Counted from the first letter of the stretch, positions 4,798-64,000 are shown. The stretch: 64,000 nt of DNA from Thecamonas trahens ATCC 50062 (GCF_000142905.1 NW_013657629.1:1-64000), one strand, 5' to 3'. Made by a program: numbers and translations. The notes: generated by a model not told the origin, from the letters alone.

Positions 4798-7700
4798 ATG
4801 AGCCACGTCCTCGCCTCTTTTGTGGCGGCGTGTGTTCTCCTCCCGCTCCTCGCCACCGCCTTTACCACCCCCACCTCCGCCCTCTCCCCTGGTGTTTGCG
4901 ATGTACGCCACTCCTCATGCCGCCCCCCCCTCCCCCTCCTCCCATCCCCAGCCCGCACTCACCCCACCCACTCCCCTACAATCTCAGCACCAAGTGGGGT
5001 ATGCCGACTTCTCCCCGGATACCCATACTCTAATCTGGCTCGGCACTTCTCCGCGTGCAATGGTCTCAGGAAACCTCGACGGCGACGGTGTGCCTGAGCT
5101 CGTCGCCGCCGTCCACACCAGCCATATCTCAGCGACTCGAGTCATTGTCTCGGTCGTTCCGAGCTCTGTTGCTGCCATCGCCGATGGCTCGTTTCCGCGA
5201 CCAGGTTATGCGCCTGTTGCGGAGCCTGCTGCCTCGCCGCTGCTTTCCTTCTCAGGCTTCTACACCTCGATGCTCCCGCCGTCAACGCCCGCCATGGCCT
5301 CTAGTACGCTTGCCGTCGCTGACGTCAACGCCGACGGACAGGGCGATCTAGTGTATGCTGCAGCAAGCGGCTCTGCAGGCGGTGCGGTTGTCGTCTTGGA
5401 GCAGGCTACGTCATCGCCATACGCGTCGCACCTGGCAACGCTTCCGCTACCCGAGGAGATGCGCTCTCTCCTGCTCAACCACGGGCTTCGCGTTCCTATG
5501 GCTGTTGCCGACGTCGATGGCGACGGTTCACAAGACATCGTCTACTCCTCGGCCTACGACACGCCGTATACCGTGGTCCATGACCCTGACAGCTACATCT
5601 TTAACGATGTGCTCCTCGCCACTAACCCATCCGGCACCGGTGCCTTCCTCGCGCCGATCCGCCTCGCCTCCGTCACCAACGGCCGTGGCATGGAGGCCCT
5701 TGCTCTAGCCGACATGGACGCCGACGGTGACGTGGATGTCTTGTTTACTGACACTGGTGGTGGCAGTGTCTGTGTTCTCTACGCCCTTGCCCCGGGCGTC
5801 TTCAACGAGACATCCTCTCCGCCCGTCTGCACTGCCGTCGAGACAAACGTCGACTACATGCATGTTTTCGACTTTGACGCTGACGGTGACTTGGACATCC
5901 TCGCCATGGACTCTGACAAAAGCATCTGGCTCATTCCCAACGCCGCGGGGGCTGGCTCTCCGTTTGCCTACACTTCGTTGACACGCTCGGCTCCGTTCCC
6001 CACATCCGCCGCCTACTCGTCACCGATTGTTTTTGATCCAGACAATGATGGTGATCTGGATATCCTCTATCCAAAGCCCGTAGACGGCTTTGTCTATCAA
6101 CGCTGTGATGGTCTCGGTTCATACACTGAACTCATCATCGCCCACGACCGTGAGCTTGTCTCTACTACGTACGGTGACCTCAACGGTGACTCCTTCCTTG
6201 ACGTTTGTGCAATTGACAACGTGAACAGACTGGTGTGCATCCTGTACAACTCGGGTGCCGCCACCTTTGATGCTCCCATTGTGGCATCGGGCTCTTACCT
6301 ATGGACCCCTTTGTACTCTACTATTGTTCTTACCGACCTCAACGCCGACGGTCGAGACGACTTGGCCATCATGTCTTTCGACGACAACGCCATGAATAGT
6401 CTGTGGATTGAGTTCAACGACGGTTCCGCCGTGCCCTTTGATGGTCGACCCGACGACATTCTTCTCGCTGGTGTCTCGGCCACCTCACGCTCCGTCTCTA
6501 CCCGCAGCTCGCCCCCACCACGCATCGACGCTAACAACGACGGCATACTTGACTTTGCTGTCGTCCGGTATGACCGGTCCTCATTTGATGTTGTCTCGTA
6601 CGTCCCCAGCGGCAAGACTACTTTTGCGCTCTCCTCAGTCCACGCCCCGTACGCAAGCTACCAGTCAGTCTGGCTGCGTGACGTTGATGGAGACGGCGAT
6701 GTTGACATTCTTCTCTTCTCGTCGCCGTCCGTCGGCCAGTTCTCGCTCCTTCGCTCGCGCTTTGTCGATGACGCCTTGTCCGCCGGCTCGACGCTAACTA
6801 CCGATGCCTCCACCGTCACCTTTGGCTCGCTTCCTGCCCACTCGGACAGCAGTGTGCCATGGATGGGTCCCGGCCCAACGTCGGGCACTGGCCTCGACTC
6901 GGGCTTCCTTGTCGGCGCGCAAGACTTTTTGGCCGTCCCACCCTCAGGATCCATCTACCACGTGACTGTTGCCGACTGGCTCGATCCTGCCGCCTCCGCT
7001 GCTGTTACCACCGTACATACCCGCTTTTTGCCGGCTGCCGGTACCACCCGTCCGTCGGCTGTCGCGTTCGATGCCAACAACGATGGCTTGCCAGACGTTG
7101 TTGCTATCTACACCTACCCCACGCCCGAGTTGTACCTCATTCTTGGCCCGACGTACAGCTCGCCGACCCAGATCCCGACCGCGGGCCTGGCCTCACCGCC
7201 GTATGTTCCTTTCGTCTTTGATGCTGATGACAACGGCGACCTCGACATTGTCCTCACAGGCAGTGCGGCCACCTATATTTTCCCGTCATTCGGCGACGCC
7301 ACCTTTGGTGCACCTCGTCACGTTACAACCAGCAGCGGGTCCGCCCTCGACATCGCTCTCTTCCGCATGCCCGACTACATGGAGCCCGCCAGTTCGGCCT
7401 GGATTGTTCCGTCGAGTCGCGGGCTGGGCCTCGTCACTCAGCCCCGAGTCGATGTCACCCGCCCACTCTCCTCCTCCGTCGGCACTGGCTCGCCGAAATG
7501 CGAAGGTGTCCTAGGCACTCTTGTAGGAGACTTTGACAACGATGGCCGCCCCGATCGTGCATGCATTCACTTGACCAGTGGACTCCTCATGCACCGCGGC
7601 TCGCACCTCGACCTCCGTCTCGCAGGCACGAGCGCAGGTGCCCTCGCCTTTGGCTCCGTCATTCCCCCGCCTGACTCGGTCATGCCCATTGTTGTCGATG

Positions 7701-10700
7701 TTGACGGCTCGGGCATCCCCGACATCGTCTACAGCTCAGCCGGAGGCATCCACGTTATTGTCTCGTCCAACAACCCCGCGGCCCCGTTCACTCTCCCTCC
7801 GATCACCGTTCCGGGCTCAGCCATGCTCGGCGCTAGCAATCGGATCGCCATGCGCCTCACCTCGTCACCGCTGCCGTCCGTCATCGGCTTTACCAACACG
7901 GCCATGTACGCCATGGACCCAACTGGTGACCCGGCTGCACCGCTGAGTGCCCCGCGGCTACTGGCAAGCTCCACTGTTAGCCGTGTCTACTTCCCCCATG
8001 CTGTTGATGTCGACAACGACGGCCACCTCGACATCCTCTTTGCGACAAGCAAGAGCGTTGCGTTCTATCGCGCCAACTTTTCTCTTCCGAACAACTTTGA
8101 GGACTCTGTCTCCCTCGTTACTTTTGCCAACAACATCCAGCGCGCCCTCGCCGCAGACCTCGACAACGATGGCTGCATCGACCTTGTTGTCGACCTCATC
8201 ATCGGTGACTATGTCGGCACACGCTACCTCTACGGTCCTTACACCGCGTGGGCAACCGCCGATCAGCATATTGTCTCGTTCTACCATCCCAACGCCACCC
8301 ACCTTCCCTATTCCGCCGGCGGCGGTGCTAACATGGCCTACTATGACTACTTTAGCCTTCTCGACTACAACCGCGACGGCTACATGGACATTGGCAAGTT
8401 TCCGATTTCGAGCCACACACTGCCTGGCGCCATCATCTACAACCGCGGGTCTGGTGCTCCTCCAGACAAGCGCTTTGTCTCGCATACCGACAACTTGATC
8501 ACAGGGTACACCATCAACACCACGCCCCTCAACATCGCCGTGGACTACAACGGCGATGGCGAGCTGGATCTTGTTACCCGCAACCGACTCCATCTCTCAT
8601 CGCCGCAGATCGCGCGTCGCGCGCCCGTCACGGTCGTGGTTGATCCTGTTCGCTGCGGCTACACCCTGGCATGCATTGTCGCTTCTGTTGCAGAGACCGG
8701 GACATGCCTCGGCGACACTGTCCTGGTTCCCGGCGGAACCTACGCTGGCTGCGGCGTTTCTGGCCCGCTCACCCTCGCGCGCTCGATCACCCTCGCGCCC
8801 GTTCCAGGGACAGGGGCCGTTGTCATTGACTGTGCCCACAATTCGTCTCCGTTTGCTGTCGGAGGCCGTTACGGCCTGCATGTCACGGGTGGTGTCACTG
8901 TCACTCTTCGTGACATGACCATTGCCAACACCTTTACTCACCCGGCTCGAGCCGGCGGCGCTGCCCTCTCGGTCTCGGCCGCCAAGCTCATCCTCGACTC
9001 GGTCACCATCATCAACGCCACCGCCACCGGCGGTGACCTGGTCTCGATTGAGAGTGCCGGTGTCGGATATGGTGCTGGCATCCTTGTTCGCGATGGCGGT
9101 GAGCTCGTTGCCACCAACGTGACCGTGACTGGCTGCTCGGCTGCCCTTGTCGGTGGAGCTATCGCCGCCGTCGGCCGCGATACCCGCGTCACAGTCGTCG
9201 ACTCGATCTTGGCCGGCAACACTGCGCTCATTGGTGGTGGCGCCGTCTTTGTCGAAGTCACCAGCGGCGTTTCGTCACTCTCGCTCCGCGGCTGTGCCGT
9301 TTACGACAACATTGCGCCGGGTGATCTCTCCGAGACCGTGCCCATCTCCCACGGTGGCGCTTTGTCCGCTGTTGCTCTTTCAGGCGTTCTGGAACTCGAG
9401 CTCTCCGCTGGCACCTCGCTTGTGCGCAACTCGGCACTCTCGTCTGGTGGCGGTCTGTCAGTGCGTGCGACGCAGGCCGCCAGTGGCCGGGTTGTACTCG
9501 ACGACGTGCGCATCGCCGCAAACTTGGTGGCGGGCAGCGGCGGCGGCGCGCTCTTCTCTGCCGCCGACATCTCGCATCTCGACATTGAGCTTCTTCACAA
9601 TGTGGTGTTTGAGGACAACGCCGCCGGTGAGTCTGGTGGTGGCGTCGCTTTTGTCACGCTCCCGCCGTTTGGACAACAAGACACGGCCTCGGGCTCCCTC
9701 AACATCACCTGGGGCTCGGGCTTGCTCGCGCGCAACACTGCAGTCGAGCATGGCGGCGGCATAGCCGCGCTTGTCACTGCCGCTTTTCTGGTGCCCTCGC
9801 CACCGATCGCGCTTGCTGCCCGTGGTACCGTCACCTTTGACGCCAACGTCGCAGGCCGTATGGGCGGCGGCCTGGCGGCCTCGGGTCGCGCCGTGGTCTC
9901 CCTGGATGCCCCAGTCTTTACGCGCAACCGGGCCGTCTTTGGCGGCGTTGTCGCCGCTGCGCCGACTGCCAGCTACCTTGTTGGCCCAACTTTGCCGTCG
10001 GGCTCGCGATTTGCGGTCTCGGCCGCGTCGATCCCCCCCGAGACCATCACCGCCGCTGCCATCCCCTGTGCCACCCGCGGGCGCGTCCGTCTCAACTCGC
10101 CGTCTGGCAGTGGCAACGGTGCTGTCTACGGTGGCGTCGGCTTTGCATGCACCTCCATTCTCGAGCTTGTTGGCCTCGACGCAGCGCTCCTTGATGCATC
10201 GCCCACAACTGCGACATCCAAAGTCAGCGCCCCGCCCGCCGGTGGCGGCCTGGTCTTCACTTGCGTCCCGGCCTCTCTCCTCACCGCCGACGGCACGTGC
10301 GGCTCGCCGCTGCCTGACATTGTCCCGCTCGTGCCGTTCACCTCGTTTGGCTCGGACAGCGAAGCTGGACTCACCGCCGGCACTGTCAACGCATCGCTCG
10401 CCTCGCTGCGAGCAACGTATGGCGTCAGTGCGGTGGCCGGTACTGCGCCAGCCCGGTTGGACTGGCTCACACTCCCGCCCGCCACCGTCTCTTCTGGCTT
10501 TGCGCCTGGCCCTGGCTCAAGCGACGTTTTGCTCTACGACGCACTCGGTGCGCTCTTGAGCGACAGAAACATCCATCTCGAGCTGCGACTGACGGCCGCC
10601 GATGCCGCCGATCGGTTTGCTTTTGTCACCGGCTCGCCGACGCTCGAGCTGGCCAGCAACCCGATCTCGTTTGGCACCGTCGGCATTGCGCTCCGTATCG

Positions 10701-12656
10701 GCACGCCGCCTGGATCCGAGGTCACCTTTGAAATCGGATTGGTGACGGCCGCCTTTACTTCCAGCTCGCCACAGGCTGCTGCCCTGCGCCTCACGGGAGC
10801 CATGTCGCTCGAGGAGTGTCTGCCTGGTGCCGGCGTGCGTGTCGGCGGCGACATCGGTGTCCTCGAGTGCGAGCTCTGCCCAGAGGGCACATTCTCCAAC
10901 GAGACCTCGCTCGAGCCTTGCCCAACATGCGCCGGTGAGTCGCTGCTGTCAGGTGTAGGTGCCACTCGGTGCGTCGCATGCCCGATTGGCGCACGCCCAT
11001 CCCGGGCACGCTCGACCCAGACTCACAACTTGGAGTCAACTGCACCTGCCTCCCGTCGTTTTTCTCGCGCAACGGCATCCAAAACGACAACTGCGAAGAG
11101 TGCCCCGAGGGCGGCGTCTGCCTCGGAGGCGCTGCGCTTCCTGTCGCCGCGCCAGGCTTTTCCCGTCGCCAGACGTGCCATTTGTCTTTGTGCGGTGCAA
11201 GCGCGACACGGCGTGCGTCGGAGGCGCCTTTCCGTGCGCGCCGGGCTACGATGGCTACCTGTGCAACGTCTGCCAGCGCGGGTACTTCTCAGACACATCG
11301 GGTGGGTGCTCGCGGTGCTCATCGCGAGCAACTCTGCTGTTTGGCCTCTTTGTCACCATGGTGGTGGCCATGGGCCTGTTCATGCTTGCCGTCGTCCTCG
11401 TCGCCATGCACCGCTCCGCCCTTTCGACGGTAGAGACGGTGACCGAGACCGGGCGCCCGCTGCGCCTGGTGCCGGCGACGGCGTCGATGGCGGTTGTGGC
11501 CATGCAGGTTGTCGGCGTCATTGCCGACACCAACGTCTCGTGGAACTCGTCGGCACACTCGGTCCTGGACGCGTTCAACATCTTCAACGTCGACGTCAAT
11601 CTGTTCGAGTCCGAGTGTGTGCTCGAGACGTTCTACACCACGTACTCGATGTCGATTCTCTTCCCGATCCTCATTGTTATCTCCATGCTCATTGGCGCCG
11701 TCGTCGTCCGCCTCTGCCGCACACTCTTTTTCGTCTGCGGAGCACTGCCGGCGTTTTCCCTCCGCGCAGTGTGCGAGACGGCGGCCTTTACCTTTGGCCC
11801 GCTGCTCTACATTCCGCTCTCGCGAGCGACGCTGGTTTACTTTGACTGCACCCGGCTGCCGAACGGGACATGGGTGCTTGACTCCAATCCGGGCATCGAG
11901 TGCTTCACCTCGGAGTGGATGCGCTACCTCGGCGGCGCCATCGGCGCCGTCGTCATCTACGTCTTTGGCATGCCGACATACTTTGCGGCCATGCTTTACG
12001 CGCACCGCAAGACGCTGCTCGAGGAGACCACCGTTGTCCGCTACGGTCCGCTCTACCGGCTCTACTCGCAGTCGTACTTTTACATGGAGGTAGCCATTCT
12101 GGGCCAGCGGCTTGCGCTTGTCCTCCTCGCCACCTTTTTCTCGAATCAGCAGCTCATTCAGCTCTCGGGCATCATCGGCGTGCTCGGCGTCTCGCTCGCC
12201 CTCGTCGTCCGCCTCGAGCCATACCTGTACAACATCTACAACCGCACGTTTGTGCGGCTCAACGCCCTCCTTGCCATCCTAGCCCTCGTCGCCATCGGCA
12301 GCTACGCCGAGCGCTCGGCCGGAGGCTCGGCCGACACCTTCTTCATCACCGCCGTCATCGGCCTCGTCGCCGCCATTGCCATTGTCGCCGTCGTCTCCTT
12401 TGTCATCGAAGTCCGCGGCATCTACCGAGAGCGCAAGGGCTTCTTCTCCAACGTGGATGTCCAGCGCCGCAAGCTCATTGTCCACATTCGCAAGACGCTT
12501 CCCGACCTTGACCCCGAGTTCCAGTCGGAAATGGGCCGCGTCCTCGACTACTTCCAGCCACCCGACAGTAGCGCGCCGACGCGCAAGACGAGCGACATCT
12601 ACGAGGTCGACTGGGACAAGGCCGGTGCGGATGTGGAGCTAGATCTTATTCTGTAG
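4798..12656 (+). CDS. Large surface receptor-like protein: signal peptide, ~18 FG-GAP/VCBS repeats, parallel beta-helix (GGA[ILV]/FxxN) region, Cys-rich CxxC region, multi-pass TM C-terminus
   Basis: ATG 4798 gives signal peptide MSHVLASFVAACVLLPLLATA. A phase-0 intron 4903-4987 (GTACGC...CTCAG) joins the 4820 ORF frame. There are many DxxxDGxxD motifs. Two apparent 1-nt deletions (~10993, ~11160) link the ORF frames 4820, 10969 and 10959. Stop at 12656. Confidence 0.85.
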
Positions 12657-60913: not shown

Positions 60914-61462
60914 CTACAGGCTCTCCCAGGCCTCGGGGCTTGAACACGATGAGTCTGAATCGGTGGCCCAGATGGCCGGCGGGGCGTAGAACTGGCCGAG
61001 GCCGTCGTCATTGGTGTCCAGTTCGTCATCGTCGTCAGTATCAGCCTCGCTGTTGCAATCTTCATCAGCGTTGTTTTTGTCACGGATAGACGCGTGTACA
61101 CCGCGAACTGCATGCGCCATCGTCACGAGCAGGCTCACCCACGCCTCGATGCACTTGCTGGGCAAAGGAAAGTGGAGCTGCTGCTGGCCGAGCGGCGAGA
61201 AGCCGGCAATGAGGCTCTCCTTGGAGAGTAGAACACAGTAGGTGGCAAAGAGACCGAGCGCGGTACCAGAGAGGAGTTTGACATGTGGAGCAGGAGCGAC
61301 CCACTCGCGGATGTCCGTCTCGGAACTTTTGATGCTCACGATGGTGCCGAGCGCGTAGTGCGCCGACTCGGAGGCAGCTGAACCCATCAGCCGCAACGAC
61401 GCGGCCGCGGAAACCGCGCCTGCCACCGCTAGGATGAAGGCAAGGGCAATCGTGGACGACAT
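60914..61462 (-). CDS. Hypothetical membrane or secreted protein with acidic C-terminus
   Basis: ATG-initiated 182-aa ORF with a hydrophobic N-terminus and coding-like codon use. It fills the space between two clear genes. Confidence 0.55.
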   Translation of the reverse strand: MSSTIALAFILAVAGAVSAAASLRLMGSAASESAHYALGTIVSIKSSETDIREWVAPAPHVKLLSGTALGLFATYCVLLSKESLIAGFSPLGQQQLHFPLPSKCIEAWVSLLVTMAHAVRGVHASIRDKNNADEDCNSEADTDDDDELDTNDDGLGQFYAPPAIWATDSDSSCSSPEAWESL

Positions 61463-61714
61463 CTCCGTACTTGATGGGATTCAGAGAGAGGTGTACTGTC
61501 TTGGTCTCGCATCGCCTGCGCCCTGCCGAAAGTGCACCTGCATCGCCTCGCCGCCCGAGTCGCACAACGGGCCAAAGCGGTGACGTCGTCGGCACACTCG
61601 GCACACTCTGCGACGGCACACAAAGAGGGAATACAGGACAGATGCATGCAGATGAGATTTTTATCACAGAAAATGGTTGGTAGGTGCTCAGCATGGAGGG
61701 CGACGATCGGCGAG

Positions 61715-63939
61715 TTACTTCTTGCCCTTGCCCTTGCCCTTGCCCTTGCCCTTGCCCTTGCCCTTGGCGAGCCCTTCTTAGACGAACCCTTCTTGGACGG
61801 GCCCTTGCCCTTGGAGCCCTTGGAACCCTTGGAGCCCTTGGAGCCCTTGGAGCCCTTGGAGCCCTTGGAGCCCTTGGAGCCCTTGCCCTTGCCCTTGGCA
61901 GCCGGCTTGGGCTCGTCGACGTCAAAGAGCGATGAGTACGAGCGGTTCTTGCGGACGTTAATCTCGTCGACAATGGTGGCGACGGCCTCCTCGAGGCCGT
62001 GGTTGTCAAAGTAGTACGGATCCTCGATCTCGGGAACCTCAAAGTTCTCCGAGTCGACAAAGTACTCGACCGAAGGGGCGAACCACTTCAGGCGAGCACA
62101 GTAGCCGACGATGAGGCCGGAGAGCATGGCGTGAGCGAGGGTGATGACGAGGAATATGATCTGCATGGTGCCCTGGGCAATCATGGAGCAGTCCGACGAC
62201 GAGGTCGAGAACGAGGAGTAGTGCTGGGCGAGGGCCTCCTCGCCGCCAAACTTGTAGCACGAGGCCGACCAGGCGACAATGGCCGAGGCAATGCCGGAGA
62301 GGATGCCCGGGAGGCCGTGGAGGGCCTGGACACCGGCGGTGTCGTGGATGCCGAACCAGTTCTGGAGCTTGGGGAGGAAGACGACGTAGCCCGTGACCGA
62401 GATAATGGCACCAAGGGTGCCGACCAGGATGGCGGCGTAAGGCTCGATGGGCATGTTGGCGATGGAGCCAACGGCGACGCCGCCGGCGAGCACGGCGTTC
62501 TGGATGTGGACCATGTCGAAGCGCATGGTGTCGGAAAAGTACGACGAGGCGGCAAAGGCGGTGACAGCCGACGCCGAGATGGAGAGCACCGTGTTGACGA
62601 TGGTACGGTGGCGGAGGTCCTCGGCGGCCGGTGCGGCGTTGAACGACGGCCAGTAGAGCCAGAGGAAGACGGTGCCGATCATGGCAAACAGGTCCGACCG
62701 GTACGACGAGCCATTCTCCGAGCCCGGTGCCATAGCAGCCCGCGTGGTGAGCATGTACGACGCTGCCACGCCAAAGTACGCGCCAAAGACGTGGACCACC
62801 ATCGAGCCACCGACGTCGGCAATCTCGAGGTGGAGCCCAATCTCCTCGTTGACGGCAAAGAAGATAACCTCCCAAAAGGCCACAAAGAGCATCTGCAGCG
62901 GCGAGATCTTGCCCAGCAGCGCGCCAAACGAGATGAGGACGGCAGCGGCGGCAAAGTCGGCCACAAGCAGCTTGTTGATGTCGATGGCGACTTTGTGCGT
63001 AAAGCCGCCGTCAAAGACGTTCTCGAAAAAGCCTGAGACAAGAATGTGCCACTCGATGACAAAGGCGGCCACGAGGAGCGTGACCGAGACCGACGAGAAG
63101 CCGTACTTGCGGAGGTAGGTCATGAGGAAGCCAAAGCCAATGAAGATCATGACGTGGACGTCCTGGTAGAGTGGGTAGGTGTCAAGCTGGGCGTTCGGCT
63201 GGAGCTTGCCGTCCTGCAGCGCGAGGTCGCGGTCGGCGTCGTCGCCATAGGTGGCAAAGAGAGCAAAGAGCACAATGAGGACAACCTGGAGGACGGCGAG
63301 GGCCACGAAAAAGTGGTTCTGGTAGAACTTGTGGTGCTCGGCAGAGCCAGCGGCGCCGGCAAGCATGTCATACAGGCGGTTCGAGCCGGCGTGCGCCCGG
63401 TGGCGCTCGGCCTCGTCAAGCGGCGTGACACCAAAGATGTCCTTGTGCAGCGGGTCGGCGCCGGCCTTGAGCAGGAGCAGCGCAATGTCCTCCGAGCCGG
63501 CCACAACCGCGCGATGGAGCGGCGTCCGCCCACGCTCGTCGGTCACGTCGGCCTCGGTCCCACCGATGACCATCTCCTTGGCCGCCTCAAAGTCGCCCAG
63601 TGTAGCGGCATCGTGCAGCGTCTCAGCCTTGACCCGGTTCCGCGAGCCGCCGGCCTCCACAAGCAGCGCGTGGACCCGCTTCGACGAGTGCTGCAGCGCC
63701 TTGTCCAGCGGCGTGTACTTGCGCCGATCCTTGGCATTGACATTGGCCCCGTGCTTGAGCAACATCGACGCCAACGCGTAAAAGTCACCCTCGGCCGCAA
63801 TGTGCAGCCCCGTCCGCTCGTTCTTCCCATGCGCCGTGTTGACATCCACCTTGTTCTTCTGGATCATCCGGAGCGCACGCTCCTGGTCGCCACGCCGGCA
63901 CGCCTTGAAAAAGTCGTCGAGGTTGGCTGCAACCACCGT
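61715..63939 (-). CDS. Rh-type ammonium/gas channel with N-terminal ankyrin repeats and a Lys/Gly/Ser tail (5' end outside window)
   Basis: Ankyrin motifs RTGLHIAAEG, YTPLDKAL, TLHDAATLG, GRTPLHRAV, VTPLDEA. Rh motifs YQDVHVMIFIGFGFLMTYL, DVGGSMVVHVFGAYFG, FLWLYWPSFN, HIQNAVLAGGVAVG, HDTAGVQALHGLPG. Acceptor CAG at 63942-63940. Likely true stop is TAA 61715-61717 after a 1-nt correction at ~61768. Confidence 0.92.
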
Positions 63940-64000
63940 CTGTCGCCGCCACAGGAATCGTGATTGTGATCGCCATCATCGTCATCATCATCGTCACAAG

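Follow-up and report, generated by a model that had tools for sequence, protein, structure and literature searches.

An Rh-type channel with a fused ankyrin-repeat domain in Thecamonas trahens and other protists

Introduction

For twenty years ankyrin has been known to associate with Rh proteins, both in the red cell and in the kidney, and the role of this contact is a matter of debate: it may do no more than anchor the channel, or it may control transport as well. Here we describe a locus at which an Rh channel and ankyrin repeats are encoded by a single gene. It lies on the minus strand of a stretch of 64,000 nucleotides, hereafter the window, from Thecamonas trahens ATCC 50062 (GCF_000142905.1, NW_013657629.1:1-64000), and we read it as one real gene of this apusomonad that encodes an Rh-type channel with a fused domain of six ankyrin repeats (ANK); for this identity and architecture we estimate a probability of about 0.85.

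The closest described systems are mammalian. In a cryo-electron microscopy structure, repeats 1-5 of ankyrin-1 hold RhCE's N- and C-termini, and the key residues are, according to the authors of that structure, not conserved in RhAG. The C-terminal tails of Rh and RhAG are bound by AnkR; AnkG attaches to a juxtamembrane motif of the RhBG tail (residues 419-421) and is required for transport by RhBG (PMC9467607). An earlier note on this DNA had invoked the binding of human RhAG by the N-terminal repeats of ankyrin-1; in that form the statement does not agree with the structure, in which the bound termini are those of RhCE, but the contacts of AnkR and AnkG with Rh-family tails do make the parallel with mammalian ankyrin-Rh complexes legitimate.

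In its geometry the fusion is similar to the ankyrin-1 complex of erythrocytes and to the pair of RhBG and ankyrin-G, with ankyrin repeats at the cytosolic face of an Rh trimer, a placement that in Thecamonas is predicted; relatedness is not implied by this likeness. In the mammalian complexes the repeats belong to a separate protein of 24 repeats with spectrin-binding domains, and in the erythrocyte a single ankyrin is attached to each trimer through RhCE, itself devoid of the twin histidines, whereas in Thecamonas six repeats would be carried by every pore-competent subunit.

Covalent joining of an ammonium-channel fold to a cytosolic domain is also found in bacteria (PMC5764959), in Ks-Amt5 with its histidine kinase (6eu6) and in the Sd-Amt1 receptor (8qj3/8qj4), both of which are Foldseek neighbours of our query. 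These channels are of the bacterial Amt type and bear C-terminal signalling enzymes, unlike the Thecamonas protein, which is a eukaryotic Rh with N-terminal binding repeats and no enzymatic output. Repeats of a similar type are likewise fused to membrane channels in the plant K+ channels GORK and SKOR and in NOMPC, but the channel folds are unrelated, and the plant proteins carry their ANK domain on the C-terminal side.

Results

Channel and ankyrin repeats share one reading frame

Pfam profiles recognised two kinds of domains within the same open reading frame (ORF). Ank_2, Ank_4, Ank, Ank_5, and Ank_3 matched at amino acids 28-180, with E-values of 1.6e-19, 3.9e-18, and 2.9e-15 for Ank_2, Ank_4, and Ank, respectively, and Ammonium_transp (PF00909) matched at amino acids 249-616 (E=1.4e-65, 222 bits against a cut-off of 23.2). 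The translation of 61429-63939 contains no stop in frame between the two regions. The earlier note had described ankyrin repeats running in frame into a complete Rh channel with both pore histidines, and this is confirmed, the histidines being H383 and H541. Residues are numbered from the first codon of the assembled exon, and the coordinates of all features are given in Table 1. All searches and structure predictions were carried out with this exon alone (exon 2 of our gene model), without the putative exon 1 discussed below.

By sequence comparison, the channel clearly falls in the Rh branch of the Amt/Mep/Rh superfamily and is closer to Rh than to Amt/Mep. Searching the solved structures with phmmer returned RhCG (3hd6) with E=6.6e-106, RhAG with 5.2e-94, and the bacterial Rh50 protein NeRh50 with about 5e-50, and AmtB was absent from the best 60 sequence matches. 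The alignment with RhCG spans RhCG residues 21-452, with approximately 41% identity over the channel. An AlphaFold2 (AF2) model built on an alignment of homologues reached a mean predicted local distance difference test score (pLDDT) of 86.3 and a predicted template modelling score (pTM) of 0.75, and shows 12 long helices at amino acids 208-615, including the eukaryotic transmembrane helix TM0. In the structural comparison with Foldseek, template modelling scores were 0.91-0.92 for RhCG and RhAG, 0.83-0.87 for NeRh50, and 0.75 for AmtB.

The residues that define an Rh pore are present. The conserved aspartate D375 and H383 lie in DVGGSMVVHVFG, and the gate phenylalanines are F329 in ADF and F433 in WPSFN; all four, together with H541, align with their counterparts in RhCG, and in 60 relatives these positions vary little or not at all. 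Since the channel part has all that an Rh pore needs, the straightforward reading is a predicted SLC42-like conductance for ammonia or ammonium (NH3/NH4+), possibly also for CO2.

Two further PF00909 matches were found in the genome, a normal Amt on contig C5 and a weak match on contig C38. The latter is a frame of 782 codons (G000:C38:325798-328146, corresponding to L004:1096-3444, minus strand) with a partial Ammonium_transp match (E=7.4e-10, amino acids 409-648), preceded by about 400 N-terminal residues to which no Pfam family, and no Ank match, could be assigned; possibly this is an Amt/Rh relative that has diverged very far.

In the ankyrin domain of the fusion protein, AF2 builds 12 helices, that is, six helix pairs, mostly with pLDDT values of 88-96: residues 2-15/19-27, 44-50/54-62, and 77-83/87-95 for repeats 1-3, and 102-114/117-125, 140-147/150-158, and 173-179/188-196 for repeats 4-6. 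The earlier note had counted about five repeats at 63400-63939; the repeats are there, and their number is six, over amino acids 2-196 (63352-63936).

In the family to which the protein belongs, the domain has a recognisable consensus, in which the pair DYDxRTALHxAAxEG...DRxGxTPLDDAxRxGH occurs twice (query amino acids 36-100 and 132-196), and its hairpin motifs (DYDxRT twice, RxxxRxGD, and DRxG) are kept, with the C-cap residues, across very distant lineages and supergroups. This consensus (DYDxRTALH...DRxxxTPxDxA) is similar to the repeats of plant GORK/SKOR and may resemble those of glutaminase, a likeness that we take as a lead only. The Thecamonas domain is the most divergent of the family, with 24-39% identity to its relatives, compared with 42-53% for the channel. 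Both DYD motifs are lost, HGKNER and DERGR standing in their place, and RRGD has become RHGN; R42 and R138 are retained. Matches of the repeats in the Protein Data Bank (PDB) were generic and comprised ankyrin-1/2 constructs, other ankyrins, designed repeat proteins, GORK, and SKOR; in this comparison we found no preference for the Rh-binding repeats 1-5 of ankyrin-1 and no specific relatedness to them.

The architecture is widespread and old

Approximately two-thirds of the best 120 matches to the full protein carry Ank families together with PF00909. When domains were mapped onto the 134 proteins of the first search, an ANK region of about 190 amino acids ended 10-25 residues before the Rh region in 83 of them, and when both searches were considered, the same order and spacing were found in 88 of 178 related protein clusters. 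The query fits this geometry, its ANK domain ending at amino acid 196 and TM0 starting at amino acid 208. The statement of the earlier note that Rh/Amt proteins normally lack a large N-terminal domain thus holds for characterised proteins only, given that about half of the related clusters retrieved carry ANK.

Complete transcript ORFs with the fusion come from Diphylleia rotans (CRuMs), from Cavostelium, Protostelium, Soliformovum, and Physarum (Amoebozoa), and from Entosiphon (Euglenida), so that in these relatives both halves are on one mRNA. The fusion is also present in a cluster of the Tara Oceans metatranscriptome and in a protein of the Planoprotostelium genome named “Rh type B glycoprotein”. 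Many of the sequences without ANK that fall within ANK clades are fragments truncated at the 5’ end; a few others, such as P0267 and P0275, look complete.

In a tree of the channel domain built with IQ-TREE, all 43 ANK-bearing sequences, that of Thecamonas included, are found on one side of a branch with an SH-aLRT support of 95, and on the other side are proteins of animals, Capsaspora, Chromosphaera, and Rhodelphis that lack ANK. A tree of the ANK domain alone gives the same subclades as the Rh tree, an agreement that speaks for a single ancient fusion event, with both halves passed on together, and not for repeated fusions. For a rooted analysis, twelve bacterial Rh50 sequences were used as the outgroup. 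In the free tree, the animal-type clade came out within a grade of ANK proteins, which would mean that the animal Rh proteins lost the ANK domain. We do not claim such a loss: according to the approximately unbiased (AU) test, the alternative tree, in which bacteria and the animal-type clade stand together and all ANK sequences are on one side, is likelier (+22.8 log-likelihood units, p-AU 0.78). Animals may have lost the domain, or their Rh proteins may go back to a paralogue that never had it.

The earlier note had proposed a survey of the architecture as a test that would count against its reading if the fusion turned out to be widespread and already characterised. Widespread it is, in 88 of the 178 clusters, and there is no sign of prior characterisation: full-text literature searches returned no description of the ANK-Rh fusion, a 2024 review of the Amt/Mep/Rh superfamily does not mention ankyrin, and the members exist as unremarked database entries. 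We regard the fusion as real, ancient, and widespread, with a function that is yet to be explored, and the Thecamonas protein as atypical of the family.

A conserved motif in the cytosolic tail

Beyond the last transmembrane helix, the family shares a cytosolic C-terminal motif, several positions of which are invariant to the same degree as the pore residues. In 60 relatives, D629 is invariant and F627, P636, E639, P641, F644, D645, R647, and G648 (query numbering) are conserved in at least 90%. The motif was found in 79 of 88 relatives with ANK and in 13 of 90 without it. Thecamonas keeps PYYFD and has HGL in place of RGE. We searched for paired changes between the ANK hairpin residues and the RGE motif and obtained no usable signal, the coincidences seen (Thecamonas, P0062, P0058, and P0026/P0037) being anecdotal.

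The comparison with human RhCG and RhAG (SLC42; 3hd6, 7uzq) places these features in context. The proteins share the 12-helix fold with TM0, the twin histidines, the phenylalanine gate, the aspartate, and a juxtamembrane FxD...WE.PE tail, whereas the human proteins start a few residues ahead of TM0, with no ANK domain, and their tail lacks the PYYFDxRGE extension. The RhCG alignment puts the FxD of the ANK-Rh family at the equivalent juxtamembrane place, and it may correspond to the ankyrin-binding motif at RhBG 419-421. Taken together, the sequences show the co-inheritance of ANK domain and channel, and we place the protein in an old subfamily, present across many protist lineages, in which the C-terminal motif has been passed on with them.

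The two ends of the gene

Position 63939 is not a start codon. Stops lie directly upstream of it, and the first ATG in frame (63868) is already inside repeat 1. Because no ATG in frame precedes repeat 1 and stops lie upstream, we propose that the start is probably supplied by an upstream exon of 65 codons and an intron of 496 nt that crosses the edge of the window. The candidate intron is C-rich, has the donor GTACGT at C51:64435, and leaves both splice sites in phase 0. It looks native to this genome, because the intron of an annotated Thecamonas ABCD protein, which maps to two exons in the window, has matching features: a GTACGC donor, a C-rich body, and a CAG acceptor. An ABCD transporter ORF of the window shows 100% identity to the NCBI protein of T. 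trahens ATCC 50062.

The 3’ end presents a different problem. After the C-terminal motif the exon encodes a basic low-complexity tail that is not conserved in the homologues. In the channel frame its 6-nt repeat is translated as (RA)7, in a second frame as (KG)7; after (RA)7, the channel frame goes on for about 95 unremarkable codons down to 61429, the stop codon as assembled being at 61429-61431 on the minus strand. The KG frame can be reached from the channel frame by the gain of one base or the loss of two near 61762-61772. It is likely that one base was lost in the draft assembly near these positions, because the KG reading prolongs the basic theme of the tail, because the next ORF of the minus strand starts at an ATG at 61462, within the long reading, and because the window contains nine runs of N; in that case, the TAA at 61715-61717 is probably the true stop. 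The lower boundary given by the earlier note, 61715, is the base at which this TAA ends; the codon does not belong to the assembled channel frame, whose ORF continues to 61429. This frame problem leaves the fusion itself untouched.

That next ORF (60914-61462, minus strand), which overlaps with its ATG the long Rh-tail reading, encodes 182 amino acids and is hydrophobic at the N-terminus and acidic at the C-terminus. It matched no Pfam family, and no encoding contig was matched in the contig search, which possibly did not cover the source genome’s own records.

These irregularities raise the question of whether the fusion is an artefact in which two neighbouring genes, or a decaying gene, are read as one ORF. 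The assembly is a gapped draft of 28.7 Mb in 131 contigs, and an ORF head that lacks an ATG, an inconsistent frame in the 3’ repeat region, and an unusually divergent ANK domain are what such an explanation would predict. However, it would have to account for 837 codons free of stops across the junction, for the same junction geometry in more than 80 homologues, spliced transcripts included, for pore residues that are all intact, and for an intron model that resembles an annotated intron of the same window. We consider it highly improbable.

Table 1. Features of the ANK-Rh gene, in the direction of transcription. Positions are those of the window unless prefixed with G000:C51; aa, amino acids.
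Feature	Protein position	DNA position	Strand	Basis and remarks
Putative exon 1		G000:C51:64436-64630, outside the window	-	65 Ser-rich codons from the ATG at 64630
3’ end of the putative 496-nt intron		63940..64000 within the window	-	Continues to G000:C51:64435; acceptor ...gacag/ACG at 63940/63939
Main coding exon as assembled (ANK domain, Rh channel, low-complexity tail)		61429..63939	-	836 codons and stop; ORF list, translation, Pfam
Six ankyrin repeats, in two similar triplets	aa 2-196	63352..63936	-	Pfam, AF2 helices, family consensus
Linker from the last ANK helix to TM0, 11 residues	aa 197-207	63319..63351	-	AF2 secondary structure, pLDDT about 62-85
Rh channel domain, 12 transmembrane helices	aa 208-615	62095..63318	-	phmmer, Foldseek, AF2
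Pore histidine 1 in VVHVFG	H383	62791..62793	-	Aligns with the TIHTFG histidine of RhCG (3hd6); invariant in 60 family members; codon checked
Pore histidine 2 in ALHGLPG	H541	62317..62319	-	RhCG alignment, family alignment, codon check
Conserved cytosolic C-terminal motif		61993..62061	-	Query reads FVDSENFEVPEIEDPYYFDNHGL; consensus FxDxxxWEVPxLExPYYFDxRGE
Low-complexity basic tail		61721..61897	-	9-nt repeat x8.8 encoding (GSK), followed by a 6-nt repeat x7.7; Tandem Repeats Finder, translations
TAA closing the (KG)7KK reading		61715..61717	-	Not in the assembled channel frame

Neighbouring genes

A glutamate dehydrogenase gene (ELFV_dehydrog, E=1.3e-80) is located at G000:C51:68506-69882 on the plus strand, about 3.9 kb upstream of the probable ATG of the Rh gene, with a GST gene (C51:66791-67852, minus strand) between the two. 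That an ammonium channel adjoins an ammonium-assimilating enzyme is suggestive. Elsewhere in the window, at 4820-11845 on the plus strand, there is an ORF of 2341 amino acids with multiple FG-GAP repeats (FG-GAP_3, E=6e-55) that is integrin-alpha-like; apusomonads have integrin-type proteins.

Discussion

What the ANK domain does for the channel can be approached from its geometry. The tether between the last ANK helix and TM0 is so short that the domain must sit beside the cytosolic face of the channel. Just under the membrane, at the place where the C-terminal tail emerges, the ANK domain would act as a binding platform for the tail of its own or of a neighbouring subunit, in a cis version of the binding of Rh tails by mammalian ankyrins, and would in this way set the activity or the placement of the trimer. 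We put forward this engagement of the tail in cis as a tentative model. It is consistent with a linker that is short and of conserved length, as seen in the 83 homologues and in the AF2 models, and with a tail motif that in part varies as little as the pore and is found largely together with ANK. The mammalian case speaks for it as well, in that ankyrins bind the tails of Rh proteins there and RhBG needs this contact for transport. AF2 also appears to give the ANK domain a fairly defined position, since the pTM values of the two monomer models (0.75 and 0.78) exceed what the channel, with about 60-65% of the residues, could contribute by the pTM formula.

The same fixed position has been considered in the light of GlnK, which on AmtB provides the precedent for a reversible plug, and of which two structures (PDB 2nuu and 2ns1) are among the structural neighbours of the query. 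One ANK domain per subunit, held by a short linker at the cytosolic face, could in principle block the pore exits of the trimer on a signal. We regard such a plug as unlikely, however: the modelling gives it no support, and Pfam identified no sensor or ligand-binding element in the ANK domain.

A different possibility is that the ANK domain does not dock on the channel and serves as a free adaptor that recruits other proteins, for instance an enzyme that handles ammonium, a kinase or phosphatase, or a factor of the cytoskeleton or of trafficking. Recruiting partners is the general role of ANK domains, and the repeats of human ankyrin bring together Rh, AQP1, band 3, and protein 4.2. The preservation of the hairpin-tip residues (DYDxR, DRxG, and RxxxRxGD) over very distant lineages would fit a conserved ligand of any kind, and AF2 did not place the tail on the ANK domain. 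Nevertheless, we found no candidate partner, the six repeats come without the spectrin-binding part of true ankyrins, and a role in cis would account just as well for the short fixed tether and for the co-inherited C-terminal motif. We hold the adaptor to be conceivable, close behind the cis model and, like it, short of probable.

Several observations weigh against our reading of the gene and of the engagement of its tail in cis. At the level of the gene, the frame is inconsistent at the 3’ end and the start codon depends on a predicted intron. As regards the protein, the Thecamonas ANK domain is both the most divergent of the family and lacking in the DYD hairpin motifs, so whatever the domain binds may have been altered or relaxed in this organism. 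That the C-terminal motif and ANK occur together is for the most part an effect of clade, and there are exceptions of both kinds: P0267 and P0275, which look complete, have the motif and no ANK domain, and one ANK clade (P0026, P0037) has no motif. Animal Rh proteins that lack ANK also share the FxD...WE.P portion of the motif, and the pLDDT of the motif is low in both monomer models, at about 45-77, with values of 46-77 in one and below 50-60 in the other.

The earlier note had also read the gene as a Rosetta-stone fusion, that is, as a single polypeptide whose parts correspond to proteins that interact elsewhere. This reading is plausible. A much bolder version would take the ANK-Rh fusion as the ancestral eukaryotic form of Rh, the repeats having been lost toward the animals, such that the binding of RhCE, RhAG, and RhBG tails by separate ankyrins would re-create in trans a contact formerly made in cis; the FxD...PYYFDxRGE tail would then be the original ligand of the ANK domain, and the engagement of the two would control channel activity. 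We consider this version doubtful.

For the family as a whole, textbooks portray Amt/Rh proteins as bare channels, and this view reflects a narrow sample, given that about half of the closest database relatives of the Thecamonas protein carry ANK. The ANK-Rh subfamily offers a system, contained in a single polypeptide, in which it may be asked whether the contact with ankyrin repeats anchors the channel or controls its transport.

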